From Rebecca billardiae RCC1528 (Eukaryota; Protista; Haptophyta), in contig OZ251222.1 in NCBI GenBank assembly GCA_965240325.2, forward strand, positions 4,960,001 to 5,024,000: a DNA stretch of 64,000 nt, read 5' to 3'. Below the pieces are notes generated by a model that saw nothing but the letters and a program-made list of their open reading frames with translations, was not told where the DNA came from and did not search any database. Position 1 is the first letter of the stretch, and every line of letters starts with the position of its first letter. Made by a program: the position numbers and the translations under genes. Below are positions 1-43,798 of this stretch, one piece after another.

Positions 1-43
1 CATCCGCCTGACAATGTACCAAATGTCATTGGGTGTACCGCCA

Positions 44-2678
44 CACAGTGCCGGAAAACTGCTCAGGGTGACGTTTTAAGTTGTCCGCACCACTAGTCGA
101 ATCATCGGACAATTCTGAAGCGGTGCGCCTAAATTCGGCGCACCATAGGCGCGTCGAATCGTGGCACAGACCTTGGTAGCAGGCCACACCTGAGCGCGCT
201 GCGCGCGCCGACGCGCGCTCGGCGCGGGCAAAAAATCATGCGCCGTTGGCATTACGCAGCCCCGCGCAGCGCTGTGCTCGAGCTCGGCGGCGGCGAAAGC
301 GGGCGGGCGCACACGGCGGTGCCCGTGCGCGCTGCTCCGAGCGCAGCTGCGGCCACCCCGGCGGCATAACGCCGGTCGAGGGCACGAAAACCGATTTTTC
401 GGGAAAATGCAGAGCAGCGGCGCCCGAGCGCGCCCGAGCTCGTCGCAGCACAGTCTCCTGGTGGCTGCGCCCCGTGAAGCCACGCCACGCGGGGCGCTGG
501 CGTGCGCGTGGCCTGCGCCCACCGTGCGCTGCCCGATCATGGCCGTCGACCGCTCCGAGCGCCTCACCACGCGTGCTCGAGCCCACCGATACTGACGCCC
601 GAGCACGGTGCCGGCAGCGCTCGCAGGTGGGCGTCGGAGAAAACACGCCGGCCGAACGAGCTTGAAGCGTCCGCCGCGATGCCAACGGCAGCGGACGACG
701 TGCGCGCCACCTCGGCGCCAGTCGCCCAGCCCTTGCGCGGCGGTGCGGGCTCGCTCGTTCGCCGCCATCAGCTGCGCGCGCGCAGCCCGATCACTGCCCG
801 CTGGTTCTGTTGTCGAGCAGCTGCGGCCTGCCACGCGCACTGCCGGACATTGAGCCACAGCGCGAGCACGCGCCTCGTCTGGCACGCGCGAGCACTCAGC
901 ATCGTGCGTGGCCACCATGACGCGCCCATCTGCGCCAGCAGCGATGAGCACGCCGCCGTTCAGCTCGCATCGGGCTCGCTCGCGACGCAGCAACGCGCGG
1001 CCGTAGCGGCAGCAGCGGCGCCGTCGAGCACGCGCAGCAAACAAATATGCAGCGCGGGCGAGTCGACGGTCTGGAAAATGCGCGATCACGCCACAGCAGG
1101 CTGGCAGAGCCCGCCCGAGCTGCAGCATGCCGTAGGTGCTGCCCCAAGCTCTCGACTGCCCGTAAGCGGCGGCATGTGCGGCGGCGCCGGCGGCGGCCAT
1201 GCTGCCACGCCGTTGCGCGCCGCGGGGCGCCGTCGGCACCTCTGTGGTGAAGCGCACAGAGCTCGAGCCCACGGGGGCTGGCGACCGTCAAACCGACACC
1301 CCATGACGCGGGGCTGCGTGCGCCAGCTGCGCGCACTCCGTGGGCCCACCTAGCCCGCTCGAGCAGCTCGCCTTGGGTGCGCGCAGCGGCTCGAGCACAC
1401 TGGTATGGGACGCCTGCCTGCGGTGCCGCCGAGCACATGCGGCCGACGGTCACTCAGCACGGGCGACTCGACGGCGGCGAGCAGGCGCGACGGCCTCGCC
1501 GCGCCGCGGAAAAGCCTGCCCGGGCTGCAGCACGCCGTAGGAGCAGCCCAGCGCCCTCCTCCGCCCTCCAGCTTCGGCGCGCGCAGCAGGCCCGGCGGCG
1601 GCCATGCTGGCGTGCCCAAGCATGAAGATGGGCGCGGCCGGCCGCGCCGTCGCAAAGCGCGCAGAACTCGAGCTCGGGGGGGCGGACGGCCGCCAAACTG
1701 GCGCGGCAGGACGTGGCACTGCGTGCGCCAGCTACGCGCACCCGCTGCGCCCGCGTGGCCCGTGCGAGCGCCGCGCCTCGAGCACACGCAGCTGCTCGAC
1801 ACAGCCACGGCAGTGTGGCTTGTGCGCGTGCACGTGATCAGTCTCAGCTCTGAGGCGCGCGCTCAGGAGGGCTGCGGCCGGGCCGAGCGCGATCTGCGCG
1901 GACGGTACAGCCTGGCGGCTCATGCCAGCCAGCCCAAAGCCCGCTCCGCCATCCGCGTCATGGCGCTCCAGCCTCTCGCGTGCTGCGCTGCAGCCGCGCT
2001 CGGCAAACGGACGTCGCCCAGCCCGCCTTGCACGCGGCTGAGCAGTGGCAGCCAGGCGAAGCGTCGTCGCGGGCGAGGCTGCGCTGGGTGATGCGGCTCG
2101 GGTCGGTGGGCAAGTCGCACCCCGCCGTCGGTCGCCTCCACGCCTCAGGCTCGCTCGAGGTCAAAGACAACTGCGCGGCGCGGCGTTTGCGCGGGCGGGC
2201 CGCGGGCGTGGCGGGGTGTACGCGTGCAATGTCACAGCCTCCCACACAATTTCAGGAGGGTGAGACGCACCGCCAGCGGCACCCGCACACAATCCCACCC
2301 TGCGCGAGCCACCTGCCGTGTCGACTGAAGCATCAGGCTCGGGCGCAACCGCGGGCGGTGCATGCAAGAAGCTCGCGAAACGCACCGCGCGCGCCGTGAG
2401 GGCGAAAGGAGAGCACCCGTCAGGGTGGCGAGGAACTTGCCCAGCGCCACGCGGAAGACGACCCCAGCCCGCGTCGACGCATAGTCGGGCCCGCGAGCAG
2501 CCTCGTCGGTCTTCGCCGAGTAGATCGCGCCGCGAGCCGAGGCACCGCTCGTTTGAGGCTCCGTCCGCCGCGAAGTCGCGGCTTCCACCCGAGTTCCACT
2601 GTCCGGCCGAGACCGGATTCGCTGACTCGAGCTGCGGACCGTCCGAAGCGTCACGGAAAATTCCAATCCTGCACTGTG
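44..2678. mobile_element. Non-autonomous DNA transposon, copy 1 (CACAGTG termini, 2-bp TSD CA)
   Basis: Starts CACAGTGCCGGA (44) and ends TCCTGCACTGTG (2678). Flanked by CA (42-43) and CA (2679-2680). A full-length inverted second copy lies at 3787-6420. Confidence 0.85.
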
Positions 2679-3786
2679 CATGTACACTTTGGTACATAAA
2701 TGGTACACTTTGGTACATTTCATGAGTGTACCAACGTGTACCAACCATGTACCAGTTTGCACACAAAAGTGTACCAAGTGTACCAACTCCTCCCTGATAA
2801 TGTACCAACTGCTCCCCAAAGTGTACCAACTTGTCCCAGGGTGTACCAAAAAATGTACCAACTCGTCCTGAAAATGTACCAATAAGTGTACCAAATTTCC
2901 GCGGAATGTACCAACTTGGTCCAGGGTGTACCAACAGTGTACCAACTCGTCCTGAAAATGTACCAAGTGTACCAAATTTCCGCTGAATGTACCAACTCGG
3001 CCCAGCAGGGTGTACCACAAGTGTACCAACTCCGGCACGAGTGTACCATCTGGCATCTACTGAACCAGCCGTCCGGGAAGGTCAAGGTGCGCCCGTCCAT
3101 CCATCCATGGCTCTGATGCTCGTCGTGGGGGCGCTCGTCTTCGACCGCCACGAACATCGCTGCGGCGAGTGGTTGCTGATCCCCTTCCACACGATGACGC
3201 ACGCTCTGCTCGCGTTTTCTTCCGCCCGCCCGCTAGCTGTGGCACCGCTACCGCCACGCAGCGTTGCAGCTCTGCTGCCAATTACAAGCGCCGTCTCGAT
3301 GGGTACGCGCCTGATGGTGCTGCTTACGCTGGCTACGCCGAGTGCGCGTCGTGGCTGCTAGAACACGCGCGCTGGGAGGCCCATCGTCATTTGCGGATCA
3401 TCGTGGACAAACTGTGTGAGGATGTACCAGGGGCAGGGATTCTGGGTGTACCAGGTACACCCAGGAAAGTGTACCAGCCGTCTGAATCGCCGACGATGGT
3501 ACACTATATTGGTACATTCATGAAAAGTTGGTACATTGATGGTACATTGGGGGACGGTTGGTACACATGGTATGGTACATTTGGTACATCGTTATTGGGA
3601 CACATTGGTACATTCTTCGGACGAGTTGGTACATTTGGGAGGAGTTGGTACATCAGGTAATGTACCGGCCAACATGTGCTATGTGGATGTACCAAAGTGT
3701 ACCATGGTACACCCACTGACATTTGGTACATATTGTCAGGATGCGTTGGTACACTTTGGTACACTATTGGTACACCATTGGTACAC
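2679..3786. repeat. Degenerate TGTACCA/TGGTACA motif array (host of the insertions; continues at 1-43, 6421-6454 and 12693-12755)
   Basis: Roughly 55-60 GTAC-cored motifs by hand count across all segments. They are mostly TGTACCA in 2726-3050 and mostly TGGTACA in 3495-3786, with a unique core at about 3050-3420. A higher-order repeat of about 85 bp lies in 2840-3015. Confidence 0.9.
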
Positions 3787-6420
3787 CACAGTGCCGGATT
3801 GGAATTTTCCGTGACGCTTCGGACGGTCCGCTACTCCGTCAGCGAATCCCGTCTCGGCCGGACAGTGGAAGCTCGCCGCGGAAGCGGGCGACTTTGGCGG
3901 ACGGAGGGACAAACGAGCGGGCTGCCTCGCTCGCGGCGCGACCTACTCCGCGAAGACCGACGAGGCTGCTCGCGGACCCGACTATGCGTCGACGCGGGCT
4001 GGGGTCGTCTTCCGCGTGGCGCTGGGCAAGTTCCTCGCCGCCCTGACGGGTGCTCTCCTTTCGCCCTCACGGCGCGCGCGGTGCGAGCGCGCCGCCGCCC
4101 GCATGCGCCGCGCGCGTTTGCGCCCGAGCCTGATGCCTCAGCAGACGTGGCGGGTGGCTCGCGCGGGGTGGGATTGGGCGCTGTTGCCGCTGGCGGTGCG
4201 TCTCACCCTCCTGAATTGCCATGGGAGGCTGTGAATTGCCAAGTGTACACCCCGCCACGCCCGCGGCGCGCTCGCGAACGCTCCGCGCCGCGCAGTTATC
4301 TTCGACCTCGAGCGAGCCTGGCGCGTGGAGGCGACCGACGGCGGGGTGCGACTTGCCCACCGACCCGAGCCGCATCACCCAGCGCAGCCTCGCCCGCGAC
4401 GACGCTTCGCCTGGCTGCCACTGCTCAGCCGCGTGCAAGGCGGGCTGGGCGACGTCTTTGCCGAGCGCGGCTGCAGCGCAGCACGCGAGAGGCTGGAGCG
4501 CCATGACGCGGATGGCGGAGCGGGCTTTGGGCTGGCTGGCATGAGCCGCCAGGCTGTACCGTCCGCGCAGATCGCGCTCGGCCCGGCCGCAGCCCTCCTG
4601 AGCGCGCGCCTCAGAGCTGAGACTGATCACGTGCACGCGCACAAGCCACACTGCCGTGGCTGTGTCGAGCAGCTGCGTGTGCTCGAGGCGCGGCGCTCGC
4701 ACGGGCCACGCGGGCGCAGCGGGTGCGCGCAGCTGGCGCACGCATTGCCACGTCCTGCCGCGCCAGTTTGGCGGCCGTCCGCCCCCCCGAGCTCGAGTTC
4801 TGCGCGCTTTGCGACGGCGCGGCCGGCCGCGCCCGTCTTCATGCTTGGGCACGCCAGCATGGCCGCCGCCGGGCCTGCTGCGCGCGCCGAAGCTGGAGGG
4901 CGGAGGAGGGCGCTGGGCTGCTCCTACGGCGTGCTGCAGCCCGGGCAGGCTTTTCCGCGGCGCGGCGAGGCCGTCGCGCCTGCTCGCCGCCGTCGAGTCG
5001 CCCGTGCTGAGTGACCGTCGGCCGCATGTGCTCGGCGGCACCGCAGGCAGGCGTCCCATACCAGTGTGCTCGAGCCGCTGCGCGCACCCAAGGCGAGCTG
5101 CTCGAGCGGGCTAGGTGGGCCCACGGAGTGCGCGCAGCTGGCGCACGCAGCCCCGCGTCATGGGGTGTCGGTTTGACGGTCGCCAGCCCCCGTGGGCTCG
5201 AGCGCTGTGCGCTTCACCGCGGAGGTGCCGGCGGCGCCCCGCGGCGCGCAACGGCGGGGCAGCATGGCCGCCGCCGGCGCCGCCGCACATGCAGCCGCTT
5301 ACGGGCAGTCGAGAGCTTGGGGCAGCACCTACGGCATGCTGCAGCTCGGGCGGGCTCTGCCAGCCTGCTGTGGCGTGATCGCGCGTTTTCCAGACCGTCG
5401 ACTCGCCCGCGCTGCATATTTGTTTGCCGCGCGTGCTCGACGGCGCTGCTGCTGCCGCTACGCCCGCGCGTTGCTGCGTCGCGAGCGAGCCCGATGCGAG
5501 CTGAACGGCGGCGTGCTAATCGCTGCTGGCGCAGATGGGCGCGTCATGGTGGCCACGCACGATGCTGAGTGCTCGCGCGTGCCAGACGAGGCGCGTGCTC
5601 GCGCTGTGGCTCAATGTCCGGCAGTGCGCGTGGCAGGCCGCAGCTGCTCGACAACAGAACCAGCGGGCAGTGATCGGGCTGCGCGCGCGCAGCTGATGGC
5701 GGCGAACGAGCGAGCCCGCACCGCCGCGCAAGGGCTGGGCGACTGGCGCCGAGGTGGCGCGCACGTCGTCCGCTGCCGTTGGCATCGCGGCGGACGCTTC
5801 AAGCTCGTTCGGCCGGCGTGTTTTCTCCGACGCCCACCTGCGAGCGCTGCCGGCACCGTGCTCGGGCGTCAGTATCGGCGGGCTCGAGCACGCGTGGTGA
5901 GGCGCTCGGAGCGGTTGACGGCCATGGTCGGGCAGCGCACGGTGGGCGCAGGCCACGCGCACGCCAGCGCCCCGCGTGGCGTGGCTTCACGGGGCGCAGC
6001 CACCAGGAGACTGTGCTGCGACGAGCTCGGGCGCGCTCGGGCGCTGCTGCTCTGCATTTTCCCGAAAAATCGGTTTTCGTGCCCTCGACCGGCGGCATGC
6101 CGCCGTGGTGGCCGCAGCTGCGCTCGGAGCAGCGCGCAAGGGCACCGCCGTGTGCGCCCGCCCGCTTTCGCCGCCGCCGAGCTCGAGCACAGCGCTGCGC
6201 GGGGCTGCGTAATGCCAACGGCGCATGATTTTTTGCCCGCGCCGAGCGCGCGTCGGCGCGCGCAGCGCGCTCAGGCGTGGCCTGCTACCAAGGTCTGTGC
6301 CACGATTCGACGCGCCTATGGTGCGCCGAATTTAGGCGCACCGCTTCAGAATTGTCCGATGATTCGACTAGTGGTGCGGACAACTTAAAACGTCACCCTG
6401 AGCCGTTTTCCGGCACTGTG
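3787..6420. mobile_element. Non-autonomous DNA transposon, copy 2, inverted relative to copy 1 (2-bp TSD AC)
   Basis: Starts CACAGTGCCGGATTGG (3787) and ends TTTTCCGGCACTGTG (6420). Flanked by AC (3785-3786) and AC (6421-6422). Removing it restores TTGGTACACTATTGGTACAC, which matches the neighbouring repeat unit. Confidence 0.88.
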
Positions 6421-6614
6421 ACTATTGGTACACTTGGTACATCTCTAACATGTACACAGCAACGACTTCTCTTTTTAAAGCGGCCGTTAGCGTGTCCATC
6501 GGCCGGATTATTTTACGGAAAATTACTATGCGCTGCGCGCGCGCGCCCAGCGGGCGGCGCGCGCGCGCGACTAGTCCCCCCTGCATGCCCTAACCGTCAG
6601 CTGCCTGATTCCCG

Positions 6615-9600
6615 CTACCCAGCCCCGCTGCCGTCGCGCGCGACATCCGCGCCGTCGCTCACCGTCGCCGAGGCCGAGCGCGCCGCCGCCCTCAATTTGC
6701 TCTTGAGTGCCGACAAGTCCTCCTCCGGAAGCCCAGCCTCCTCGCGCACGAGCTTGCGCGCCGCGATGTACTCGTCGACCAGGTCGTGCGCGCCGGCCTT
6801 CGCCTTGCGCTGCCATTCGCGCTGCCGCTTGCCCTCCTTCTTCAGCCAGAGCCGCCGCACCTTGTCGCCGAACTCCTCCTCCGCCCACGTCGCAAGCGAC
6901 ACGCGGCGCAGGAGCTGCGCGGCCGTCGAGATGTGCGGCTGCACCGTCGACTTCTTCCCCTCGGCATACTCGCGGACGAACGAGTCGAGCGACTTGCGCG
7001 CGTTCACGAGCGGCATCGCCCGCTTGGTCACCTGCACGAAGTGCTCCTGCACCTGCTCGTCCGCGAGCTGCACGAGGTGGCCCCACCGCCTGATCAGCAG
7101 AGGCAAGACGAACCGCGCGATCGTCTTGTACTGCGAGGTGACCGGCTTGAGGACGAACAGGTCGAGCGCCTCGACCCACGCCGTCGCGGCTGCCTCAACC
7201 TCGTCCGCACGCTTCGCGCGGCCATCGTCATCGTCCGTGTAGCCGCGCGAGGAGACGAGGTCGTGCAGCTGCCACGTGAGCATGAGCAGGCGGCAGAAGA
7301 GTGCCATGCGCGGCATGTCCGCGATCTCGGCCTTCAACTGCGCCTCGTCGTCAAAGCCGATCTCGTCCATCATCTCGCGCTCCTCCTCGTCCTGCATGTC
7401 CGAGATGCGCGCGTCCTCGTCGCCGCTGTCCGCCGCGCCCGCGCTGCTCGCGCCGTCGAGATCCGCGTCGATCTTCCACACGACCTGCACCAACGCCCAG
7501 AAGACCGCGTGCGTGCGCAGCAGCGAGATGCCGTCGCCGCGGAGGTCGGGCACGCCGATCTCGTTGGTGCGCGTGCGCCGCTTGGGCACTCGCACAGGCA
7601 CGCCCGCGTTCTTGAACAGGACGATCAGGTCGTACTTGGTGAGCGGCGCGTCGCGGCCGTACAGCTCGTCCACCTCCCTCCACAGCGCCGACAGCACCGG
7701 CTTGAAAGTGTCGTGCTTGAAGTGCATGATGCCGGGGAAGTAGTTGACGTGCTCGAGCTCCAGCTGCGGTAGCAGCCACTGGTTCTCGTGCAGCTTCTGG
7801 TCGACGATGCGCTCGGCGTCCTTCGAGTCGTCGGCGAGAAGGCGGCGGCGCTTGGTCATCTCGGCGTCGCACTCGCCCTGGTCGGCAGGCGTGACCTTGC
7901 ACGCAGGGCACGTCACGCCCGGGTCCGCGTGGCACAGCGCGCGCGCGCGCTTGTACGTGCGCAGCCGCCACTGAGGCGAGCCGCCGTCCGCGCCCGCCTC
8001 CTTGACCGCCCACACGTTGAAGCGGAGCGGCGAGACGTTGTGCGAGCCCTGGCCGGCGAGGCTGGCAAGGTTGACATAATCGCCGGTGTACGTGATGATG
8101 GCCTTCTGCTCCTCCGCGTAGTCGGCCGCCTCGCCGCCGCCGCCAAAACCGCCGCCGGCCGCGCCGCCCGCCGCGCCGGCAGCGCCGGCCGCGCCGGCCG
8201 CGCCGGCCGCGCCGCCGGCCGCGGCGGCCGCGGCGGCCGCGGCGGCCGCGCCGCCGGCCGTGCCCGCGCTCGGGTTGCCAGCCGCGCTGCTCGCCGCGCC
8301 GCCGGCCGCGCCACCGGCCGCGCGGACGCCAGCGCCGGCGGTGCCGCCAGCCACGCCGCTGCCGCTGCCGCTGCCGCCCGCGCCGCCCGCGCCGCCCGCG
8401 CCGCCGCCAGCGCCCGCGCCCGCGTTACCAGCCGCGCCGCCGGCAGCGCCGCCGGCCGCGCGGACGCCAGCGCCGGCGGTGCCGCCAGCCACGCCGCTGC
8501 CGCTGCCGCCCGCGCCGCCCGCGCCGCCCGTGCCGCCGGCCGTGCCGCCGGCCGTGCCGCCGGCCGCGCCGCCGGCCGCGCCGCGGGCCTCGCCGCGGCC
8601 CGCGCCGCCGGCCGCGCCGGCTGTGACGGCCGCGGCCGCGCCGCCGGCCGCGCCGGCCACACGTGCGGTGGCGGCAGCAGGCGGCGTCGGTCGCGGCGGA
8701 AGCAGGCCGCTCCGGATCACGTCATTGATCGCGTCGGCGTGCGCACTCCATAACTCGGACATGTCCGAGTCCGGCCGCTCCGAGATGGCGATCGCCTCTG
8801 ACGACGCGAGCGCGCCGTAGTTGACGCCCCAGCCGTTGCGCACGATGGCGATCGTGGCCGTGCGCGAGTGAGCCGTGTTGCCCGCGTCCGCCGAGAGGAG
8901 GAGGACGTGCGGCTGCCCGCGCGGGCGCGCGGACTTGCCGTTGCGCTCCGAGCGATCCAGCACGGCGTGCACGGCCTGCGCCCACGGCCGCGCCGCCGAC
9001 TCGCTGCCGATCATGAGCACGCCCGCGCCCGCGTGCTCGCGATCGCGCTGCGCGACCTCTCGAGAGCCAGCCGCCGGCGGCGGGATCGGGTGGCGGATCG
9101 GCTCGCGGCCGAAGCCGCCGCGGAAGACGGTGCGAGCCGAGTGCTCGCCCGTCACCGGGTGGATCTCCTTCCCCACCCACTCGCGCCACGTGTCGAACTG
9201 CGCGTCCGTGACGTTCTTCGAGACGAGGTAGCCGGCGACGTCGTGGTGCGTCTGATGAGATTGAATCTCGCGCACAACGCCCACTGCGCCGCGGCGCTGC
9301 TGGAGGTAGGCGTGCCTCGCCCACGGCTTGCGCGAGCCGTCGTCTGCGCCCTCGAGCATCTCGTGCAGCACGAGGTCCATCACGTCGTCGGGCGTGCCAC
9401 GCAGGATGTGCTCGATATGGTCCGCCTCCCCCCGCCTGCGCTTGCGGCACGCGTTGCTCGAGACCGAGAGAGATGGGCGCTGAGCGCGCTGCCGATGAGC
9501 GCCGTCCAGCCCGTTCAGCTCGGCGAGGTGCTCGAACTTGCCGGCGGCTCGGTCGGCGCGCTTGCGCGCGGCGTCCTTGTCGCGCTTGAGCTCGACAAGC

Positions 9601-11342
9601 TGCGACTGCTGCTCGTCGCAGAGCGACTGGGCGTGCGCGCACTGCTGCTCGAGCAGCTGCTGCGCGTGCAGCGCAGCCGCGAGCTCGTGCTCGACGCCGC
9701 TCAGCGCGTCAGCGGCGATGTGCTCGGTCGCGGTGAGGCGGCGCTCCAACTCGAGGGCCCGATCGCGCTGCGCGTCGGCGGCGCGCTGCGCAGCTGCGGC
9801 CCGCGCGTTCGCCTCTTCGAGATCGCGCCGAAGCTTCGCCTGCGCCTGCTCCGCCTCGGCGTCGTGGCGGGTGCGCGCATCCGCGCTGTGCCCGGCGCGG
9901 TACCCGGCGAGCACAGCGCGCCTCTCCGCGGCAGCAGCGGCGGCGCGCGCGGCGGCGATCCGGTCGAGGGCCTCGCGCTCGATGTTCTCGCACTCGAGCT
10001 TGACGGCGGCGATCACCACGTCGAGAACCGGCTCGAGATCGACGGCGGCCGAGTTGACGATGTCCTCGCGCTGCCGCACCGCGTCGTCGCGCTCGCGCTC
10101 GAGCTCGCCGTTGAAGTGCTCGAGCTCGGTCACACGTGTGCGCAGCGAGGTGAGCTCGAGCTCGGAAGGGACGCTGCGCGTGCTGTGCGAGCGCCGCAAC
10201 TGCTGCTCGAGCTCGGCCACGTGCTGCAGCTCGGCCATGCGCCTTCGACCCCGTGCTGTCTGCTCGTCCGCCTCTGCCTCGGGCGTCGGCGCCACGCTGC
10301 CAGCCGAGCGCGTGAGAGGCCGCTGGCGGGTGGGCGCGGCCGAGAGCAGCACGGCAGGCGGCGGCGACATGAAGGCGGGCGAGGCGACGGCAGGTGACCT
10401 CGGCGGCAGCAGCTCTTCCGCCGACCCACCGACGAACGGCTGCGCCGCCGCGCCAGCGAGGAGGAGTGGCGGCGCGGGCTGGCGGGAGGCGCTGCGCGTG
10501 ACCGCGGGCGACGGCGCAGCGGCAGCAGGAAAGCTCAAGGCGGAGGAGGCGTTGGTAGTGGCGGGCGAGAAGACGAGGTGGTCGGCGTGAGCGGGAAGAG
10601 ACGAGAAGCGGGCAGCGACGACGGCGGGAGACAAATCGGCGGCGGCGGCGGCGGCTGATGCCGCCGCCTCGCCGCCATCAGCTCGAAGGAGAGCGAGCGC
10701 GCGCGCGGTCGGTGGACGGGCGGCATCATGCGGCGAGGACAGCGGCTGCGGCTGCGGCCGCGGCCGCGGCCGCGGCCGCGGCTGCGGCGGCTGCACGAGC
10801 GGCGGAGGCAGGTGCGGAGGCGCCGACGGCAGCTGCGGCGGTGGCGGAAGCGACGGCAGCGGCGGCGGCCCCAACGGAGGCAGCGGCTGGGTGTCCGCGA
10901 CCGCGTAGGGCATCACGGCGGCGGACGATGGATCGGATGGCGCGTCGGCGCAGAGGCCGGGCGTGAGACCGAGGACTGGAACATGCGAGAGAGGCTGAGA
11001 ATGAGAATGCAGATGGGCATGCGTGGGATCGAGGGCAGAGAGATCGAGGGGGGGATGCGGCGCGACCGCGCCGTCACCAGCTGGCGCGCGACGCCATCGG
11101 GCGCTGCTCGCTGCTCGGCGAGTGGCGGTCAGCTGCTCGCGCTGCGCGCGGCGCGCTTTCCAGTCCGCGCGCTTGCGCCGTGAGACGTCGGACTCGGGCG
11201 GCGCCGCCGGTGCCGCCGCGGCGGGCGCCGCGGCAGGCGCTGCCGGCGGCGCGCCCGTGAGCTCCGACGGGCCCTTCGTCACAGACGGCGTGCGCCGCCA
11301 GCCCCGCCTCCGCCGCGGCGCATCGAGACGCCCTGCGCGCAC
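6615..11342 (-). CDS. RAG1/Transib-like DDE transposase (5' end uncertain, probably spliced)
   Basis: Motifs are collinear with the RAG1 core as recalled. RPSLSVSSNACRKRR ~ NBD RPRQHLLSLTRRAQKHR. VTDAQFDTWREWV ~ LSCSQYHKMYRTV. LLLSADAG ~ KESCDG (D at 8886-8888). PDSD ~ DESD. YTGDYVNLASLAGQ ~ GYDEKLVREVEG (D at 8079-8081). PGIMHFK ~ DALHCD. LRGDGISLL ~ MNGNFARKL. LADEQVQEHF...NARKS ~ ASEGNES...NARQS (E at 7044-7046). An N-terminal coiled coil precedes these. Confidence 0.75.
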   Translation of the reverse strand: MRAGRLDAPRRRRGWRRTPSVTKGPSELTGAPPAAPAAAPAAAAPAAPPESDVSRRKRADWKARRAQREQLTATRRAASSARWRRAPAGDGAVAPHPPLDLSALDPTHAHLHSHSQPLSHVPVLGLTPGLCADAPSDPSSAAVMPYAVADTQPLPPLGPPPLPSLPPPPQLPSAPPHLPPPLVQPPQPRPRPRPRPQPQPLSSPHDAARPPTARALALLRADGGEAAASAAAAAADLSPAVVAARFSSLPAHADHLVFSPATTNASSALSFPAAAAPSPAVTRSASRQPAPPLLLAGAAAQPFVGGSAEELLPPRSPAVASPAFMSPPPAVLLSAAPTRQRPLTRSAGSVAPTPEAEADEQTARGRRRMAELQHVAELEQQLRRSHSTRSVPSELELTSLRTRVTELEHFNGELERERDDAVRQREDIVNSAAVDLEPVLDVVIAAVKLECENIEREALDRIAAARAAAAAAERRAVLAGYRAGHSADARTRHDAEAEQAQAKLRRDLEEANARAAAAQRAADAQRDRALELERRLTATEHIAADALSGVEHELAAALHAQQLLEQQCAHAQSLCDEQQSQLVELKRDKDAARKRADRAAGKFEHLAELNGLDGAHRQRAQRPSLSVSSNACRKRRRGEADHIEHILRGTPDDVMDLVLHEMLEGADDGSRKPWARHAYLQQRRGAVGVVREIQSHQTHHDVAGYLVSKNVTDAQFDTWREWVGKEIHPVTGEHSARTVFRGGFGREPIRHPIPPPAAGSREVAQRDREHAGAGVLMIGSESAARPWAQAVHAVLDRSERNGKSARPRGQPHVLLLSADAGNTAHSRTATIAIVRNGWGVNYGALASSEAIAISERPDSDMSELWSAHADAINDVIRSGLLPPRPTPPAAATARVAGAAGGAAAAVTAGAAGGAGRGEARGAAGGAAGGTAGGTAGGTGGAGGAGGSGSGVAGGTAGAGVRAAGGAAGGAAGNAGAGAGGGAGGAGGAGGSGSGSGVAGGTAGAGVRAAGGAAGGAASSAAGNPSAGTAGGAAAAAAAAAAAGGAAGAAGAAGAAGAAGGAAGGGFGGGGEAADYAEEQKAIITYTGDYVNLASLAGQGSHNVSPLRFNVWAVKEAGADGGSPQWRLRTYKRARALCHADPGVTCPACKVTPADQGECDAEMTKRRRLLADDSKDAERIVDQKLHENQWLLPQLELEHVNYFPGIMHFKHDTFKPVLSALWREVDELYGRDAPLTKYDLIVLFKNAGVPVRVPKRRTRTNEIGVPDLRGDGISLLRTHAVFWALVQVVWKIDADLDGASSAGAADSGDEDARISDMQDEEEREMMDEIGFDDEAQLKAEIADMPRMALFCRLLMLTWQLHDLVSSRGYTDDDDGRAKRADEVEAAATAWVEALDLFVLKPVTSQYKTIARFVLPLLIRRWGHLVQLADEQVQEHFVQVTKRAMPLVNARKSLDSFVREYAEGKKSTVQPHISTAAQLLRRVSLATWAEEEFGDKVRRLWLKKEGKRQREWQRKAKAGAHDLVDEYIAARKLVREEAGLPEEDLSALKSKLRAAARSASATVSDGADVARDGSGAG

Positions 11343-12136
11343 ACCTTGAGCAGCTCGCCGCTCACGTCAGCGCGCCCCTTCTCCTTCTTGAAGCGCCATG
11401 GCTGCATCAGCGCGTAGCGCTCGGCGTCGACGCTCACGCCGCCCTGCGCGTCCTGTGGCGCGTGCAGGCCGCCCTGCGCGTTGAGCGAGATCACGCCCAC
11501 GCGCACGTGCGCGAACTGCTGGTACGCGCCGTCCGGATCGAGCCGATGCATCTCGGTGTGCTCGATCGAGAGCGAGTGCACCGTGTTGATCGCCGAGAGG
11601 TGCCGGTCCGTGCGCGCGCCGCCGAGCGCGTTCGCCCGCAGCGGCTTCGGGACGCGGCGCATGCCCAGGTTGAGCCACGTCGAGATGCGCTCGGGCTGGT
11701 ACGAGCTCACGGTGCGCCGCGTGCGGTCCTTCTCTCGCGTCTCGTGCACGACGCCCTGGTCGTCGAGCGAGGTGAACATCGGCGAGTAGAGGGCGTCACG
11801 CGGGAACAGCGCCAGCTTGGCCTTGCGCAGCAGGTTGCCCTTCTTCCGGCTGCCCTTGATGGCGACGAAGTTGTTGACCTTGCGCTTGACCTCCGCCAGG
11901 TAGTTCTCGTTCGGCATGATCGAGTGGTCCACCTCGCTCGCCGCCTCGCGCGCGCGCAGCATGAGCGTCTCGTGCTCAGCCGCCTTCTCCGCGGCCGCCG
12001 CGGCCATGCGCCGCCGCACAGATGCGGCAGAGACCTTGCGCCCGATGCCGTAGCCGCCCTTCCGCTGCAGCTTGACCTTCTTCGGCTTCGCGCAGGAACG
12101 CTTGCCCTTGCCCACGGTAAGCACAGCCGTCGTCAT
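11279..12136 (-). CDS. Transposon-borne basic orphan ORF or first exon of the transposase gene
   Basis: ATG at 12136, protein-like composition with a Lys/Arg-rich N-terminus, inside the TIRs on the same strand as the transposase. Likely splice donor AAG|GTGTGC at 11345/11344. Confidence 0.6.
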   Translation of the reverse strand: MTTAVLTVGKGKRSCAKPKKVKLQRKGGYGIGRKVSAASVRRRMAAAAAEKAAEHETLMLRAREAASEVDHSIMPNENYLAEVKRKVNNFVAIKGSRKKGNLLRKAKLALFPRDALYSPMFTSLDDQGVVHETREKDRTRRTVSSYQPERISTWLNLGMRRVPKPLRANALGGARTDRHLSAINTVHSLSIEHTEMHRLDPDGAYQQFAHVRVGVISLNAQGGLHAPQDAQGGVSVDAERYALMQPWRFKKEKGRADVSGELLKVCAQGVSMRRGGGGAGGARRL

Positions 12137-13178
12137 TGCTGCGCGCGGCGAGCGCGGTCCCGCGCGGCCGCCGCCGGGCGCAGCCGCAGCAAGTTAGTCT
12201 GATGCAAATTCCCGGTCACCCATGCAAAAGTAAGCGTTCCCGCTGAGCATGTGCGTGGATCACGAGTAACCCGCCGCCTGAATACAAACTCCGCGCCCCT
12301 CCATACACTTCCTGCATCCCCGCGCGCGGCGGCGTGCAGGCGGGCGCAGATTCGCACCGTGTTACGAACAGACCTAGCAAAGTAGATCGGCGTGGCGGGT
12401 CGGGACGCGGAGCGGGTGCGGGGCAGGTGGGGGATAGGTTGGGGAACACCCGCGATTAGAGCACCGGTGGCGCAGCGGCGACGTGGACGCCGCCACACGC
12501 GCACGCACGGCGCACGCGCGCACCGGGACTTTCAACTTCGCGTCGGAGCTCTGGACGACCGTCGGTTGGTCCGAGCGGCGCGAGGAGGCTCTCGGGATTG
12601 TGGCCGGACGCCCGGGTTGAGCCGTTAACGGCCGAAAATCAATTTGTTGGAGTTTCCTTAACGGCCGCTTTAAAAAAGAAATCGTTGCTGTGTACCAATC
12701 GTGTACCAATTATGTACCAAAGTGTACCATGGTACATCCGCTTAGCTCGGTACACTCCTCATTCTGAGCTCGGTTTGGTGACACCTCCCAATATCGTGAT
12801 GCGTAGTAATCGTCGCGTATACTGCTACGCGTATACGTAACTGCTTATATCAGTCGTGCTGGCGGTATCATGGCGCCCGCCCCCGCGCCCGCCCCCTATA
12901 GCAGTATAGCGCGCAGCTATTACTAGGGAGCGCAGTCGTACTTTGACGACGATCGGGCGCACTGCGCAGCCGCGACGAATCATCAGGAGATCGACCTGCG
13001 TCGTCCTACCTGTGTCGTCAATATACATCGTCGATCATATAGAATGAATCGTATATATAATAATAAGCAGCTATATATATCACTCGTCCCGGCGCGCTTC
13101 ACATTCTATATTCATCATCAGCGCAATCATCACGCGCATCGTCGGCGCGCCGTCCCGTAGTCCGACGCGTCCGGCAGG

Positions 13179-15317
13179 CTATTGCCGCCGCTGCTGCTGC
13201 TGCTGTTGATGGCCAGCGGCAAAGCTGCGTGTGGTGCTGACGACGCCGTCAACGCGCGCCGCACCGCTGCTGCGTGCTGGCACCGCGCCACTGGCATCGC
13301 CCGCCGGGCGCGCGAGGACGCCGACGCTCGCCCCGTCGTCAGCGGCCTCAGCATCGTCATCGCTGGCGGCGGAGTGCGCGGAGCTGCCAGCGCCACCGTC
13401 GGCACCGGCACGGCTGCCGCCGCCCTCTGTCCACGTCGCCGCAGTGCTTGACGCGGCGTGCGCCGCGCGCGCCTCGGTCTCGGCGGCGCGTGCGCTCGAG
13501 CCCGCCGCAGCAGCCATGCGCAGCGGCCACGGGCAGCGGCGCTCCCCCTGTGCCTCCCGTGCCGCGCGCAGGCCGCGCTGCTCGGGCGGCGCGGCGGCGG
13601 CATCGTCGCGCCGTGGCTCGCCCGCCGTGCTGGACGCGCCGCTGCCGCCGCTGCCGCCCGCGCTGCCGCTCGCCATCGAGTCGGTGGAGTCGCTGTGCGA
13701 CAGCGGCGTCGCGCTGCGCCGCTCCTCGCGCTTGGCGCGCGACTCGGGCTGCTGCTGCTGCTGCTGCTGCTGCCGCGGCGGCGGCGGCGGCGGCGGCTGC
13801 CGCTGCGTCTCGGCGCGGCGCGCGCGCAGCCACCACGGCGCGCGGCGCGCGCGCGGCGCGCGCATGTACGTGCTCGCGAGCGCGAGCGGCGCCAGCGCCA
13901 GCGCCTGCAGCGTCGCGGTCGCGTAGAAGTTGGTGCCGATCCCGCTGCGCGCGATGATCAGCCCGCCCACCGTCGCGCTGCCGGAGAAGGTCGCCTGGTT
14001 GACCGAGTCGACCGCGGCGTACCGCCCGCGCTGCGCGGGCGGGACGAGGTCGTGGATGATCGACTTGGTGAGGCCGGCGGGCGCGGTGACGAGCGCGGTG
14101 CGCACGAGGTACAGCGCGACGACCAGCGCCTTCGACGCCCCCGCCTGGTACGCGCCCACCATGCCGAAGCACGCGGCGCAGCCGAGCAGCACGCACACGC
14201 CCGTCGCGCCGATGCGGCCGGCGCGCGGCGCGGCGCGCTCGGCGGCCGAGCTGGCGAGCGCGATGAGCACGAGCGCGCCCACGCCGATCGCGTTCACCGC
14301 GACCGGCGAGAGCGCCAGCTCCTCCAGCAGGAAGATCGGGAAGAAGCGCGTGCTCAGCCCCGAGGCGAGCGCGTACGCCACGTCGTAGCCGAGCACAAGC
14401 GCAGGCACGAGCAGCACGCGCCCACCGCAGCACAGCGAGCTGGTCGCGCGCGGAGGGGGAGGGGAGGCGGGCGGCGGGCCGAGCGCGGAGGACGAGGCGA
14501 GCGCGGAAAGCTCGGCCGAGGAGCTCGCACCGTCGAGCCCGCAGCCCGCGCCCGCCTCCGCGTCGTCGGCCGCATCCGGCGCTGGCGGCGGCGCCGCCGC
14601 CGCCTCCGCCTCGGCCTCGGCAGCGCCCTCGGCCGCGGCGACGTCGAGGAGCGGCTCGGCGAGCCCCGCGGCGCGGAGCGCGGGCGTAGCGCCCATCTCC
14701 GCCGTCGGCCCCACCCGCACGTCGCGCAGCGCGAAGAGCAGCGTGTTGGGCAGCAGCGTGCTGCCGATGCCAGCGTACAGCGTGAGCTGACACGTGCGCA
14801 GCGCCCACGAGTTGCCGCGCAGCGCGAAGATGGCGATGGTGAGCAGCGGGCCGCACGCGTTGGCGAGCTGGTTGACCTGGTTCTTCCGCGTGAACCACAG
14901 CGCGCGCTCGCCGTCCGCCACCGAGTCCGCGTACAGCGCGTCCACGTTCGGGTTGGCGACCGCCCAGTAGCAGCCCCAGAAGCCCATCGAGAGCGAGAGC
15001 GAGAGGAAGTGGTCGCGGTGCACGGCGAAGGCGGCGAGCGCGGCGCCGGCGTACCCGACGAGCGCGGCGACGCGGAGCATCCCGTCCCGCCGCCACCGGT
15101 CGCCGAGCCAGCCGCACAGCGGCGCGAGGAGGAGCTGCGCGATCCCGCGCACGCCGGTGATCACGCCGACCGCCTCCGCCGAGTCGGTCACGAGGTAGAC
15201 GTACGCGGCGAACACGTCGCCCGCCCAGATGGAGCGCGAGGCGGAGGAGAGCCCCGTGTACAGCAGCACGAGGATGCGGTTCGTCCGCGCGCGCGCTGCC
15301 GCCCGCGAGCTCGGCAT
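13179..15317 (-). CDS. Major facilitator superfamily transporter
   Basis: Two bundles of hydrophobic helices, MFS motif A-like GWLGDRWRR, and DLVPPAQRGR in the second half. Central loop and C-terminal tail are low complexity. Confidence 0.85.
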   Translation of the reverse strand: MPSSRAAARARTNRILVLLYTGLSSASRSIWAGDVFAAYVYLVTDSAEAVGVITGVRGIAQLLLAPLCGWLGDRWRRDGMLRVAALVGYAGAALAAFAVHRDHFLSLSLSMGFWGCYWAVANPNVDALYADSVADGERALWFTRKNQVNQLANACGPLLTIAIFALRGNSWALRTCQLTLYAGIGSTLLPNTLLFALRDVRVGPTAEMGATPALRAAGLAEPLLDVAAAEGAAEAEAEAAAAPPPAPDAADDAEAGAGCGLDGASSSAELSALASSSALGPPPASPPPPRATSSLCCGGRVLLVPALVLGYDVAYALASGLSTRFFPIFLLEELALSPVAVNAIGVGALVLIALASSAAERAAPRAGRIGATGVCVLLGCAACFGMVGAYQAGASKALVVALYLVRTALVTAPAGLTKSIIHDLVPPAQRGRYAAVDSVNQATFSGSATVGGLIIARSGIGTNFYATATLQALALAPLALASTYMRAPRARRAPWWLRARRAETQRQPPPPPPPRQQQQQQQQPESRAKREERRSATPLSHSDSTDSMASGSAGGSGGSGASSTAGEPRRDDAAAAPPEQRGLRAAREAQGERRCPWPLRMAAAAGSSARAAETEARAAHAASSTAATWTEGGGSRAGADGGAGSSAHSAASDDDAEAADDGASVGVLARPAGDASGAVPARSSGAARVDGVVSTTRSFAAGHQQQQQQRRQ

Positions 15318-20035: not shown

Positions 20036-21146
20036 TGATAGCCGCCTCTGGATCCCGCGCGTCTACTCGCCGGAAACGAATCGATCATCGATATATATCT
20101 GATGATGATACGACGACGAATTCTGATCATCGATTGCACTATATATACATCAGCGGCATCCGATCCGCGACGATCGTATCATCCGCCAGCGCAGCGCCAT
20201 CATCATATATATATATATACACAGCTTGATCAGTGTATACTTATGGCCCGCGGTGCAGGGCGGAGCGCGCAGCGTCGGCAGCGTGGAGCCCGCACCAGCG
20301 GGCCCGAACCACGTTTCAAAAAGATCTTTGATCGTCAAGAAAAAAGGGACGGGGGGCGGCGGAAAAAAAGGGACGGGGGGCGATTTTTAGGGCTGGCGGA
20401 GACCGAGTTTCGAGTTTTAGTGAGATCGCATTGAGAGGTCTATCAGGCCAAAAAAAACCGCGCCCAGCTGATTCCCTTAAGTAAAGTGCGATCTGGACGT
20501 CAGCTGGACGTGACATTAGTGTAACGGTTCGTTACGAGCGAATCGTACTCGTCTTCCCGGATCGCGTGACGTCCGGACTGGGCCACATCCGGATCGTCGG
20601 AGGTGACGTGCCCCGGCACGATGGGCGATGGCGGATATGCGGGACGGCGCCTGCACGTGCCTCCGGACCCGCCTCCCGCTTGCTGCTCACGCAGTCAGCT
20701 GCGACCGTGGCGCATGATCGCAGAAGCAGTGCCGGCAGTACGGCCTGCATCAGCTAGTGCCGCGCCGTCGTGGCGCGCGCGGTACGGTTGCGCGTTTGCA
20801 GCGCTCGCCACTCGCCCTCGGCGACGGCACGCGCGTGCGGCTCAGGTGTGTCAAATGCGGTCTCGTCGGCGCGCTTTCGCCTGCCACCTCGTGCACCCGT
20901 GCCGCCAGTTTCATCGTCTTCATGAGGACTGCTGCTGCTGTCGCCATCCGCTCTCCATCACCCCGAGTCGCCGGTCGCGCGGCGCGCGCGGTAGGCACTA
21001 GGCAGGGCGTACGGTCACTCACCCGTGCAACGGGTCAAGTGGCCAGAGTACGTCTGGTCGTTGGCTGGCACGGGCCGCAGCGCTAAAGCACCCTGCTGTC
21101 ACACCCGACTCCTTCAGTACTCCGAGCTCCGCGGCACGACTCACTC

Positions 21147-21292
21147 GGCACGATCGCGGACGGGTCGGATCCGAGCTGATCAGCCAGAGTTGGACACAGT
21201 TTGGCAGCTACTAGTAGTAATTCCGATGCCGATGGCACGATCGCGGACGGGTCGGATCCGAGCTGATCAGCCAGTTGGACATTTGGCAGCTA
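21147..21292. repeat. Imperfect direct repeat, 2 copies, period 87 bp
   Basis: GGCACGATCGCGGACGGGTCGGATCCGAGCTGATCAGCCAG... occurs at 21147 and 21234. Confidence 0.85.
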
Positions 21293-25433: not shown

Positions 25434-27492
25434 CATTGAATTATAAGGGATTTTTGTTCCTCGGAAACAAAGTGCGAGCGGCAGCCGCGCAGGCCGAGCG
25501 CGCAGCTTGGAAGACGCAGCTCGAGAGCCGCCAAGCCGCACGAGAGCGAGGCACGAGGCACCATCGTGCAGAGGCGGGCGCCCTGAAAGATGCGGGCCCA
25601 GAACAGCTGCAGCCATCAGGACAGTGGGCGCTTCCGAAACGAAGGGCGTCGTCCGCTGCGTGAGCGAGAGAGACACAGGGCCGCGTCGGTCGGCTCGGCG
25701 CCAGATGAAAGAATCCAGGCCACCAATTGGCTGTCCAGAGCCACCATCACCATGCCAACCCGCTCAAAGCTCAGGAGCAGCACAACGAGCTACGTTAGTT
25801 CTACTGGGCCGTTGCAGTGCGCGCGCACAGAGCAGGCTCGTCAAAAGACCCTCGTGGCACGAGAAGATTAGGGTGGCCAAGATAGCAGCCGGACTTGCGC
25901 TCGGCCGCCTGCCTCGGGCCGATTGGCAGCGGCAGGTGTTGATACCATACGGCGCATTGCGCGCGCTCCCATCACCGTCCTCTTCGACAATATATATATA
26001 TATAATCATCATCGGCTCCGGATTCGGTTGACCCCTGCCAGTGGCGGGCATTCTGAGAACCGAGTCGAAGTCACTCGAGCGGACCATATAGCCGGGTCCC
26101 TCCCGACCCCGGATTGATGACTTCAAAGCGACATTGAGCATACACCCACCTCCCAATATGTTTCAGGCTCAATTTTTATAAGTGACACATACAGAAATCT
26201 GACCGAAATCCGAAACATGGGTAAATGCATATTGACGCGGGTATTTCTGACGGAACTTGTATTCCATTCATGCATCGACGTGATACGCACGCCATGACCA
26301 TGTCACGCCTCACGGCAGCTCACCGCCCCGCACTTGCGAGCGCGCTCTGGTTGGTCAGCTGCGCGCGCATAGCATTGTGCCGCGCTCTTCTCTCAGCTGG
26401 TACACCGCCAGACGCGGCCGCTCCGCCGCCGCTGCCGCGTGCCTCCGCCTCGTGCCGCGTGCTGGGGCGCCGCTGAAAGTCAGGCGTGATCGGTTGCACG
26501 GGCGTGAGCACGACAACGCCGCGGACGATCGTGTCGCTCTCGATCTCGCCGGTGCCCAGCTCGCGCGAGCGCCGGTCAAGATCCATGCGCGCGTATCGCT
26601 TGAAATCAGACTCGCCCCCCCATCGTCCACCACTGCCCGTCCGCCTCCTTCTGCCGCTTGCTGCTTGTCTCGGGCTCGTGAGTCGCCCTCGTCGCGACTT
26701 GCAGTGTCGAGCGCGTAAGGATCACAAAGTACTCGTCCAGACAGAGAGGCCTGAGCATATCGACGACGAGATGGAAAAGCATCCGCTCCATCGTGTTGTG
26801 CGTCCTCGACATGTTCACCTTGATCTGATTGCAGAGGTCCGGAGACGGCGCAACGTGCAGAGAGGCTTGCACCGACCGTGGTGCACTGACGAGGTCGTGT
26901 CAGACACCGTGTGCACGATCTCCAGGTCACGCGCGACCGCAAAGAGGTGCTCGGCATCGCGGTCGCCAAGATTACCTCCCAGCTGTTCGTCCGAGACGTC
27001 GGTGTCGAACACGATGGGCACGTCCAACGCGACCCGCGCCCGCACCACCATAGTGGGCAAAAGGCCAATAAAAGTACCCGGACTCCCAGTAGAAATGGTG
27101 AAAATCGGGCTCTGGCGCCGTGTAAAAACAAGCGATCGCGGCAAACGGTGCGGATTCGCGCTCAGCTCGCCAACCCGAGTCCAGCAAGCCTTCGACCGCC
27201 TCCGTGCGACCTCGCGAAGGTCGTTTTCATTTTCGGTACGCCCGGTTTCTATGACCGGACTGGCAGGGGTCAACCGAAGCCGGAGCCCATCATCAGTTAT
27301 TATTGTGCCATCCACATACATTATGAGATTATCATCCGGCATATCTATCATCCGCGCCTGCTCAGCAGACGGTCAGATCATCCGAGCGGCGGCGGTTATT
27401 CTGACGATCTGCTTACGTACTATACTCATCATCTTCAGCGCGCACGTAGTGCTCAGCAGTGTCAGAGTGTCAGACTGTGTCAGTCATCAGAT

Positions 27493-36062: not shown

Positions 36063-36973
36063 GGGCCTGTTTTATTTCTACCAGATTCCATTTACTATGT
36101 CACGGCGACAAACCCGTGCCCGCCAGTGGGAATCGGTGTCACGCCCCGTTCAGTGTACCTCTCACGACCGATGGCGGCCCCGGCGTGCGCGAGGAATGCG
36201 ATTCCTGCACTCCTCGGTGACCTGTGAGTGCAGGAATCCAGTTGCGGCGCTCGTCCGCCTCGTCGTCGTCGCACACGAGGTACACTGAAGAGCACGGGTC
36301 AGAAGCCAGATCTCTCTGCGCGCTCGCGCCCGTGCGGCGAGGCACTGGCAGGCTTGTTCTGGCATCATCTTGGCCAAGACTGCAGCCTGCCAGATGCGCG
36401 AGGACGCGTGTGCACGCCTTTCCCGCGTCATGGGTGCGCGTGGCACGCACCCTGTCGTCATCTACGCCGAGGAGGCCTGAGCAACCAGCCCACCAACCTG
36501 CCGTGACCACGTTCAAATGCAGGCGGCAAGCTGCATGCGAGCGCACGCAACGGAAGCATCTCACGCTCGACAAGGAAGTGGCGGCGGAGCGAGTGTAGCT
36601 GGTATCGTTTGCAGCCCATCGGTTGTTCAACAATCCTGGCTCAACAACTGACACGGGCGCGACGCAGCCAAGGCAGAGTGCTTGCAGCTCGCAGCGCGCC
36701 CGCAACTGCGGTTTGCCGCCGCGGCGCGGCGATCGTCACACCGCCGTGCGCTGCGAGTGACCTCTGTGTCATGGCGAAGCACCATGGCAAGGCTAAGCAG
36801 CATGCCTTGGCAACACCTTTCGCTACAGCTCAGCGCCCTAGTACGAACATGCGCCAACGACGTGCCATCCCTACTCCGCAATCGCGCCGGCACCCACCAC
36901 CAGCGGGCAAGCCGCCATTTTACCCGGTTTTGGCGAATGTCGCCGTTGGGCTCTCGTAGAAATAAAACAGGCC
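36063..36973. mobile_element. Non-autonomous TIR element, PIF/Harbinger-like
   Basis: GGCCTGTTTTATTTCTAC (36064-36081) is inverted against GTAGAAATAAAACAGGCC (36956-36973). GAT on both flanks is a possible 3-bp TSD. GGCCTGTTT termini are typical of Tourist/Harbinger elements. Confidence 0.65.
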
Positions 36974-37419
36974 GATCTGATGGGCGCCGCTAACGAAGCG
37001 TCTCGGCACCGCATTCGCAACTACCAAGGCTGCCACTTGCCAGGCCACGGCCCGCTGGCAGTGGGAGTCTGAGCCCTGGGCACGCTGCGCCGCTCGTGCC
37101 GCCCTGTGGGCTGCTGGCCACACATGGACCACGGCGGCTTTGCGAGCCGATGCTCGGCACGGCGGCGCCCTGATCGCGTGCACTGCAGCAGAGGGCCAGC
37201 GCGCGCTGCATACCGTAATAATCAGGCGAACACCACTACCTCGGGGGAAAATGGAAATGCCCCGCCGGCCCCCTGGATTTCGAAAGTCGTTTCAGCGCGC
37301 GCAGAGGGGCGGCACCCGGGCGTCATCGTGCGAGCGGCGGGAGGCCGCCTGCCTCCGCGGCCGCGCTCGGCACACGCACCAACTGCGCCCGACGACGGCG
37401 AGGCGTCGTTGGCGGCGCG

Positions 37420-42602: not shown

Positions 42603-43798
42603 CAGGGGCTGGTGCTCGCAGCGAGGCACTCGCGGTGCGAGTGCGAGCAGGGCGCGAGCGCGAGTGCGAGCAGGGCACTCGCACTCGCGCTCGCAAGGCG
42701 CCGATCCGGCCCAGCGGGCTTGCGAGTCAACTCGCAAAGGTACTCGCAAGGTGCGGTCTAGCGCGAGTATGCGAGTTGGCGCGAGCAGAAGTGCGAGTCC
42801 CTGGGCGGCCTCGTGACCGCCTGCACGGCAGGCGAGTCACAAAGCGTCAAAGCCTCGCTGCCCCCGCCCAGGGCGGCAAATGGCGAGCTCATCGGCGGCG
42901 CCGGTCGCTTCGGCGCCTGCGTCGGCGCCGGCTGCCGAGATCACCGTCTGGTCGCTGTCGAACCAGCGCGGGGTGATCGACCCGGCCTGGCTCGATCTGC
43001 CCCCCAACGGCAAAGGTGTCTCGCTCTTGTGGACGCACGTCCACCCCATCTCGCAAGCGGCGCCGACCGACTTCTCGTACGTTCAGGTGGGCAGTCAGTC
43101 GAGCAACCCGAAGCTGTACACGCACGTGTGCGTCATGCCGGGATGCGGCCAGCGCTTCACGCTCCCCCTCGACAAGGTGCGCTCGAAGGGGGGCAAGTCG
43201 GTCTTCACGATCACAAACGCGGGCAACCACCTGAAGACGATGCACCCGCTGACCGAGTACAGCAAGAAGGCCTCCATCAAGGCGGACGAGGCAGCGCTGG
43301 GGGCGAAGCGGACCATGCAGCAGGTGGGCATGTCGGTGAGTATGCCCGTCGAGAAGCAGCTCAAGCAATCGGGCCTCCTCGCTGCGGGCTTCAAGAAGGT
43401 GTCGCGCGCCGACAAACAGCTGGCGACGCAGGCGCGGTGGCAGGGTGGTCAGGGCGGCGGGTCGGGTGTAAGGCATGCTCTAATAGGGCCAAATAGGGCC
43501 AAAAATTTTCTTCGCCTCAGGCCGGCGGGGCCCCGGGGGAGGCCCCCCGGACCCCCCGCTGGGCGTGTCCGGGGGCTGCGCCCCCGGACACGTTGCCACT
43601 TGGGACTCGCACTTTGCGAGTTGGGACTCGCACTTTGCGAGTTGGGACTCGCACTTTACTCGCACTCGCACTCGCAGCCGCCCATTCCGCCCAGTGGACT
43701 GCGAGTTCAACTCGCAGTGCACTCGCAAAGTCCCCTCAAAAGTGCGAGTGCGAGTTCACTCTACTCGCAGCCGCGGAAAGTGCGAGCGACGGTCCCTG
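42603..43798 (+). mobile_element. Internally deleted hAT transposon
   Basis: 8-bp TSD AAACTGTA (42595-42602 and 43799-43806). Imperfect TIRs CAGGGGCTGGTGCTCGCA / CAGGGACCGTCGCTCGCA. Many subterminal TGCGAG/CTCGCA repeats at both ends. Confidence 0.9.
42880..43445 (+). pseudogene. Truncated hAT transposase N-terminus with BED zinc finger
   Basis: LLWTHV...CVMPGC...NAGNHLKTMHP fits the BED pattern. No catalytic domain follows before the right subterminal repeats. Confidence 0.7.

Follow-up and report, generated by a model that had tools for sequence, protein, structure and literature searches.

Three transposable elements in a TGTACC-rich array at the start of the window (the whole 64,000-nucleotide stretch analysed here, from Rebecca billardiae RCC1528) probably form an ordinary transposon nest, in which the insertions occurred independently of the motif into an older, AT-rich and dispensable element that is itself probably of hAT type. 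Array-targeted transposition, which a first-pass annotation of this DNA had proposed, is unsupported when judged from the register of the insertions and from relatives in other genomes. In the course of events that we favour, an older non-autonomous element, probably hAT-type, would have inserted in an intergenic region, the TGTACC repeats in its arms being binding sites for its own transposase, and three cut-and-paste elements of a RAG1/Transib-fold lineage would then have landed in it separately. This lineage would integrate with a 2-bp stagger into AT-rich, TpA/CpA-rich flexible DNA without reading a motif. Such DNA would be scarce in a gene-dense genome of 73% GC, where the arms of old elements would be among the few sites on offer, and insertions there would survive in sequence that is already dispensable, with local hopping possibly adding to the clustering. 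Young elements stacked inside an older one are likewise seen in the nested clusters and hot spots described in older elements, and a fourfold transposon-into-transposon nesting bias has been reported in human (PMC2836564); the present case is unlike those clusters only in that its families are undescribed. A preference for flexible DNA without a motif is known for Ds (PMC4825651).

The boundaries of the elements and their target-site duplications (TSDs) can be read directly from the window. Element A (44-2678, plus strand) is a non-autonomous element of 2635 bp with CACAGTG...CACTGTG ends and an imperfect bipartite terminal inverted repeat (TIR), flanked by the TSD CA at 42-43 and 2679-2680. 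Element B (3787-6420, minus strand; 2634 bp) is an inverted copy of A, with the TSD AC at 3785-3786 and 6421-6422. Element C (6455-12692, minus strand; 6238 bp) is autonomous-looking and has a TIR of about 35 bp starting CACAGCAACG and the TSD TA at 6453-6454 and 12693-12694. Termini of the form CAC...GTG are common to all three. Each TSD matches its partner, an agreement that 2-bp duplications at three sites would reach by chance with a probability of about 3e-4. As the flanks are also unrelated, the insertions were three separate events, as had been concluded earlier from the different duplications. Two of them had been placed only about 34 bp apart, and the host segment between B and C (6421-6454, minus strand) does measure 34 bp, including TSD copies AC and TA. 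The further claim that the other 51 kb hold no well-supported member of these families stands as well, for a TIR-partner search of that remainder of the window returned no other CAC...GTG element with a supported partner. A CACAG following a TA run at 20220 was considered as a fourth member and rejected because it has no TIR partner. The nest is about 400 bp from a gene for an MFS transporter, and the remaining window is gene-dense.

The first-pass annotation held that excision of the three elements, each with one TSD copy, rejoins a continuous motif array. All three junctions do rejoin in this way, but the result is not one continuous array; it consists of two inverted, diverged arms around a motif-free centre. 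In the rejoined stretch of 1253 bp, TGTACCA/TGGTACA occurs 52 times, versus once in the other 51 kb. The first visible part of the left arm (1-43, plus strand) aligns to the reverse complement of the right arm and continues upstream of the window, and the rest of this arm (2679-3057, plus strand) carries mostly TGTACCA-oriented motifs. The centre (3058-3417) covers about 360 bp at 63% GC and has neither the motif nor any identified coding homology. The right arm starts with mostly TGGTACA-oriented motifs (3418-3786, minus strand), and its last part, after C (12693-12766, minus strand), begins with a TSD copy TA and closes with a candidate host right terminus ...CTG (12764-12766), where the minus strand reads CAG followed by a purine run and the motif; the candidate 8-bp flank past 12766 is AGCTCGGT. 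The arms are 73-82% alike and have 46% GC, versus 73% GC in the rest of the window. The rejoined site is thus a diverged palindrome, and its visible size is a minimum, the left end being outside the window.

This two-armed layout, comparator elements with 8-bp TSDs and the CAG-like candidate end together suggest that the array represents the subterminal repeats of a non-autonomous element, probably of hAT type, whose left TIR and TSD would lie outside the window. Short TIRs with a (C/T)AG start are a mark of the hAT group. Its TSDs measure 8 bp, and short repeats in the subterminal regions serve as binding sites for the transposase (PMC10368747). Like non-autonomous hAT elements of the Hermes, Ac/Ds and Tol2 type, the host has short motifs in both orientations and in both arms, a size of about 1.2-1.4 kb and a CAG-like candidate end, and its comparators carry 8-bp TSDs; unlike them, it has no transposase remnant in its centre and shows no left TIR or TSD within the window. 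One comparator is located in the same window outside the nest (42603-43798, plus strand), where it is intact at 1196 bp, with CAG...CTG ends, the 8-bp TSD AAACTGTA and CTCGCA arrays in both arms in the same layout as the host, and holds no CAC element inside. A BED-like ORF fragment was seen in it by eye, unconfirmed by Pfam and PDB. Two elements of unrelated families form a second cluster at 42603-45762. The other comparator, from Pavlovales CCMP2436 (L002, 14651-18107), shows the same layout with CAG...CTG ends, the 8-bp TSD GGCAGGAC and arrays of TGTATC, one base off TGTACC, and an unrelated TA-TSD element is nested in its array.

That the array is a satellite-like or regulatory palindrome rather than a transposon, with the insertions being passive, is very unlikely. 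The internal periodicities of 84 bp and about 150 bp would suit such a structure, as would a centre without transposase remnant and a host left end and TSD beyond the window, which count at the same time against the ordinary nest; however, the two arms, the size of about 1.3 kb and the CAG-like candidate end match those of 8-bp-TSD elements both here and in CCMP2436. A Pfam search of the host centre for an hAT transposase or BED remnant gave no match, and MITE-like derivatives need none. A host 24-mer had no match in viral contigs, and among 231 viral/prokaryotic loci with the triple-motif pattern none was homologous to the host centre, the element ends or the transposase.

Within the arms, the TSD of C is the TA within GTAC, that of B immediately precedes GTACC on its strand and that of A is one base further away, and all three sites fall no more than 4 bp from a GTAC centre. 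This closeness is uninformative because such a centre is no more than 5 bp away at 67% of arm positions, with a three-site chance of about 0.3. Strict sequence-specific insertion at TGTACCA, as practised by Dada and Pokey at RNA-gene targets, draws on this same proximity and is the least probable of the readings that we weighed, since the proximity is what most arm positions would offer anyway, the TSDs CA, AC and TA stand in different registers, unlike the insertions of Dada families, which share one orthologous position (PMC8869645), and the motif is absent from the flanks of relatives. The nest resembles Dada, Pokey and CryptonV in that several insertions share a repeated, dispensable target; in those systems the position is fixed (PMC8869645), whereas here register and TSD vary and the relatives lack the motif.

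For the relatives, 9 loci in other genomes supplied 12 junction flanks with a combined length of 1430 bp. TGTACC/GGTACA is present in 0 of the 12, which include the relative that shares the TIR of C at 76% nucleotide identity (L001), and no other hexamer array was found in them, in a set where most relatives are distant, most junctions are single-ended and the genomes may lack this host; these same features weigh against the ordinary nest. Most of the flanks are AT-shifted, with a median GC of 0.40 over the nearest 20 bp, versus 0.60-0.71 for the loci. A TA, AT or CA stands next to the element at 9 of the 12 junctions, and one relative (L010) has a TA TSD. The earlier proposal that motif recognition directs the elements to the array is therefore unsupported on three counts, namely the three registers, the motif-free relative flanks and the lack of a recognisable DNA-binding domain in ORF1 or ORF2 of C by Pfam scans. 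Its other option, special chromatin giving a safe harbour, cannot be told apart here from an AT/TpA preference combined with selection.

The local clustering of the insertions, to which the first-pass annotation had drawn attention, is real, but its excess is modest. If insertions fell uniformly over the empty window, three of them would crowd into 1138 bp with P = 1.3e-3, and P becomes 0.008-0.018 once insertion is restricted to low-GC DNA, both values referring to a window chosen after the fact for its cluster from 1178 windows of this genome and to a null that leaves out selection against genic insertions and local hopping. The host makes up 2.4% of the empty window, yet it accounts for 10% of the TpA steps there and for 14-34% of the low-GC DNA. 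All three insertions are in the arms (840 of 1253 bp) and none is in the centre. We infer that the clustering reflects a loose AT/TpA/CpA preference together with survival and possibly local hopping. For one window, a P of around 0.01 remains low, and this counts against the ordinary nest, as does the lack of CAC elements in the CTCGCA element and in the remaining low-GC islands of the window.

A loose tethering would account for this residual clustering in another way. The families would be drawn to host arrays because ORF1 or the N-terminus of their transposase binds either TGTACC or the host's own transposase sitting on the array, and would insert anywhere within reach, giving a transposon-on-transposon safe harbour. 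This reading is unlikely, although we place it first among the alternatives to the ordinary nest. It would explain why three insertions that represent two families, each with its own TIR, are all in the arms and none is in the centre or the other 51 kb, it can claim the residual P of about 0.01 after base-composition correction and a conserved, basic ORF1 without assigned function, and it requires no fixed register. Against it stand the 0 of 12 relative junctions with this or another hexamer array, the lack of a DNA-binding family in both ORFs and the choice of the window for its cluster; moreover, since A/B and C differ in their ends, and probably in their transposases too, the targeting would need to be common to both. 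If enrichment at TGTACC arrays were true genome-wide, it would represent a way of choosing targets that is new for a eukaryotic DDE transposase with a RAG1-related fold and would bear on RAG/Transib target choice and on site-directed gene delivery. On present evidence, array targeting as a new mode is unlikely.

Elements A and B are members of one non-coding family, 96.5% identical and in opposite orientation, and lie 1.1 kb apart on the empty site. A tblastn search with all transposase homologues found no coding remnant in either, and their TIR had no match in viral contigs. The divergence between them is uneven, at about 1.2% over the first 2.1 kb (98.8% alike) and about 12% over the last 540 bp, and the latter means that neither is a fresh duplicate or direct copy of the other. 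Both are mosaics, for which two different donors fit better than a single local hop, and this argues against a local hop within the ordinary nest. Two derivations of the pair from one another were rejected: A, spacer and B as one inverted duplication or composite element, because the outer flanks differ and each copy has its own TSD; and a conversion between the arms that would have placed a copy of A in the opposite one, because the two sites do not mirror each other in either arm register. The ends of A and B are closer to those of two transposase-bearing relatives (L016 and L017) than to the ends of C, so an autonomous partner other than C probably mobilises them.

The pair also speaks for a regional hot spot that is independent of the motif, that is, a heterochromatic or low-recombining region, or one near a donor, where local hopping and weak selection would accumulate insertions. 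One family represented twice within 1.1 kb, with 98.8% likeness over 2.1 kb, would suit such a region, and the second cluster of two unrelated families at 42603-45762 would fit it too. We regard this as improbable and rank it after tethering, since the transporter gene so close to the nest and the gene density of the rest of the window speak against it and the difference in the last 540 bp of A and B excludes direct copying; it also overlaps with the ordinary-nest reading.

The coding capacity of the nest lies in C. Its ORF2 (6615-11342, minus strand) is a stop-to-stop frame of 1575 aa that encodes a predicted transposase, in which a Gly/Ala tract splits the RAG1/Transib-like core; from the alignment, the putative catalytic residues are D819, D1088 and E1429 or E1433. 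Relatives of ORF2 number 31 among cluster representatives, including proteins of Pavlovales sp. CCMP2436, and it matched no Pfam family in Pfam scans and no PDB sequence by phmmer. ORF1 (11279-12136, minus strand) encodes a basic protein of 285 aa without known family, which had no match to RAG2 or another family. With the ORF1 of a related family it shares 46-49% identity as well as the C-terminus and stop, and thus it is probably a separate gene. The TIR of C had no match in metagenome contigs.

The transposase of C is predicted to fold like RAG1 and Transib. A single-sequence fold was of poor quality, and structural comparison used the AlphaFold model built from a 39-sequence alignment (mean pLDDT 62.6, pTM 0.59). 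Its structural matches are RAG1 (Z 14.8), BbRAGL (14.4), HzTransib (9.4) and the P element (8.5), with RAG1 and BbRAGL matches spanning Z 12-15, and Foldseek puts the same proteins on top with E of about 0.01. Besides this predicted fold, the CAC termini recall Transib/RAGL transposons (HzTransib, ProtoRAG, AanRAGL), and A and B start with the exact heptamer of the RSS, CACAGTG, while C starts with the heptamer-like CACAGCA. Transib and RAGL transposons, however, make 5-bp TSDs (PMC1131882, PMC9435367), unlike the 2-bp TSDs at all three sites here and in L010; the targets here are AT-shifted and not GC-rich, and the C transposase has no sequence-level match to RAG1/Transib by phmmer against PDB sequences or in Pfam scans.

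The combination of CAC...GTG termini with a 2-bp TSD is a signature of the CMC group (CACTA/EnSpm, Mirage, Chapaev), whose TSDs measure 2-4 bp, and is known in ENS1_Cis and CMC-NA elements (PMC6004678), and the two ORFs of C are a further likeness. Unlike CMC elements, A, B and C have no subterminal repeat arrays of their own, and no Pfam family matched the C transposase, a comparison with CMC transposases that covers Pfam profiles only. The three elements are best treated as a branch of the CMC/Transib assemblage without further assignment. Their families are undescribed and belong to a rare RAG1-fold lineage of haptophytes that makes 2-bp duplications, to which this clean case of transposon nesting adds three well-bounded copies.

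A second small nest, composed of two unrelated element families, occupies window positions 42603-45762. Its first member is an intact 1196-bp CAG...CTG element (42603-43798) with the 8-bp TSD AAACTGTA, which carries CTCGCA arrays in each arm as well as a BED-like ORF fragment recognized by eye (42880-43497), and is probably a hAT deletion derivative. The other, a 1956-bp element with GGTGGGTCCC ends and a TA duplication (43807-45762), is inserted at the final two bases of that 8-bp TSD. Nesting is also found in Pavlovales sp. CCMP2436, where a hAT-like element with TGTATC arrays and an 8-bp TSD (locus L002, 14651-18107) has at least two TA-duplicating elements nested inside it, and is itself part of a larger nest that surrounds a transposase homologue.

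Other genomes hold further relatives of the elements in the main nest. A relative of C, the autonomous-looking element, lies at L001 (1-2242) and has an internal deletion, with the end of ORF1 fused to the final third of ORF2, while C's TIR is still intact. The TIRs of transposase-bearing relatives at L016 (2345-2402) and L017 (3800-3858) start with CACAGTGTCGG and are similar to the ends of A and B, the two inverted non-coding copies; both may be related to the autonomous partner that is missing here.

Internally, A carries a direct duplication of approximately 290 bp (1108-1399 and 1513-1803; copies 72% identical), the counterpart of which is mirrored in B (5065-5356 and 4661-4951). Within the catalytic core of C's ORF2, a low-complexity Gly/Ala tract of approximately 190 aa (8150-8710), disordered in the structure model, separates the first putative aspartate from the second. 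The nest region is not gene-free, because an MFS transporter gene (13179-15317) ends approximately 400 bp away.

Elsewhere in the window, a TIR element of approximately 1.27 kb with GGCTCCGG ends (~26014-27287) has ORF fragments on the minus strand, and its TSD length is ambiguous because it sits in an ATC repeat. An element of approximately 0.9 kb with a 22-bp inverted repeat (~36063-36974) possibly has a 2-bp AT duplication. The CACAG at 20220, immediately 3' of a TA run, was excluded as an element, as no partner TIR was found. Non-coding DNA at 21140-21290 contains a short direct duplication of approximately 60 bp.
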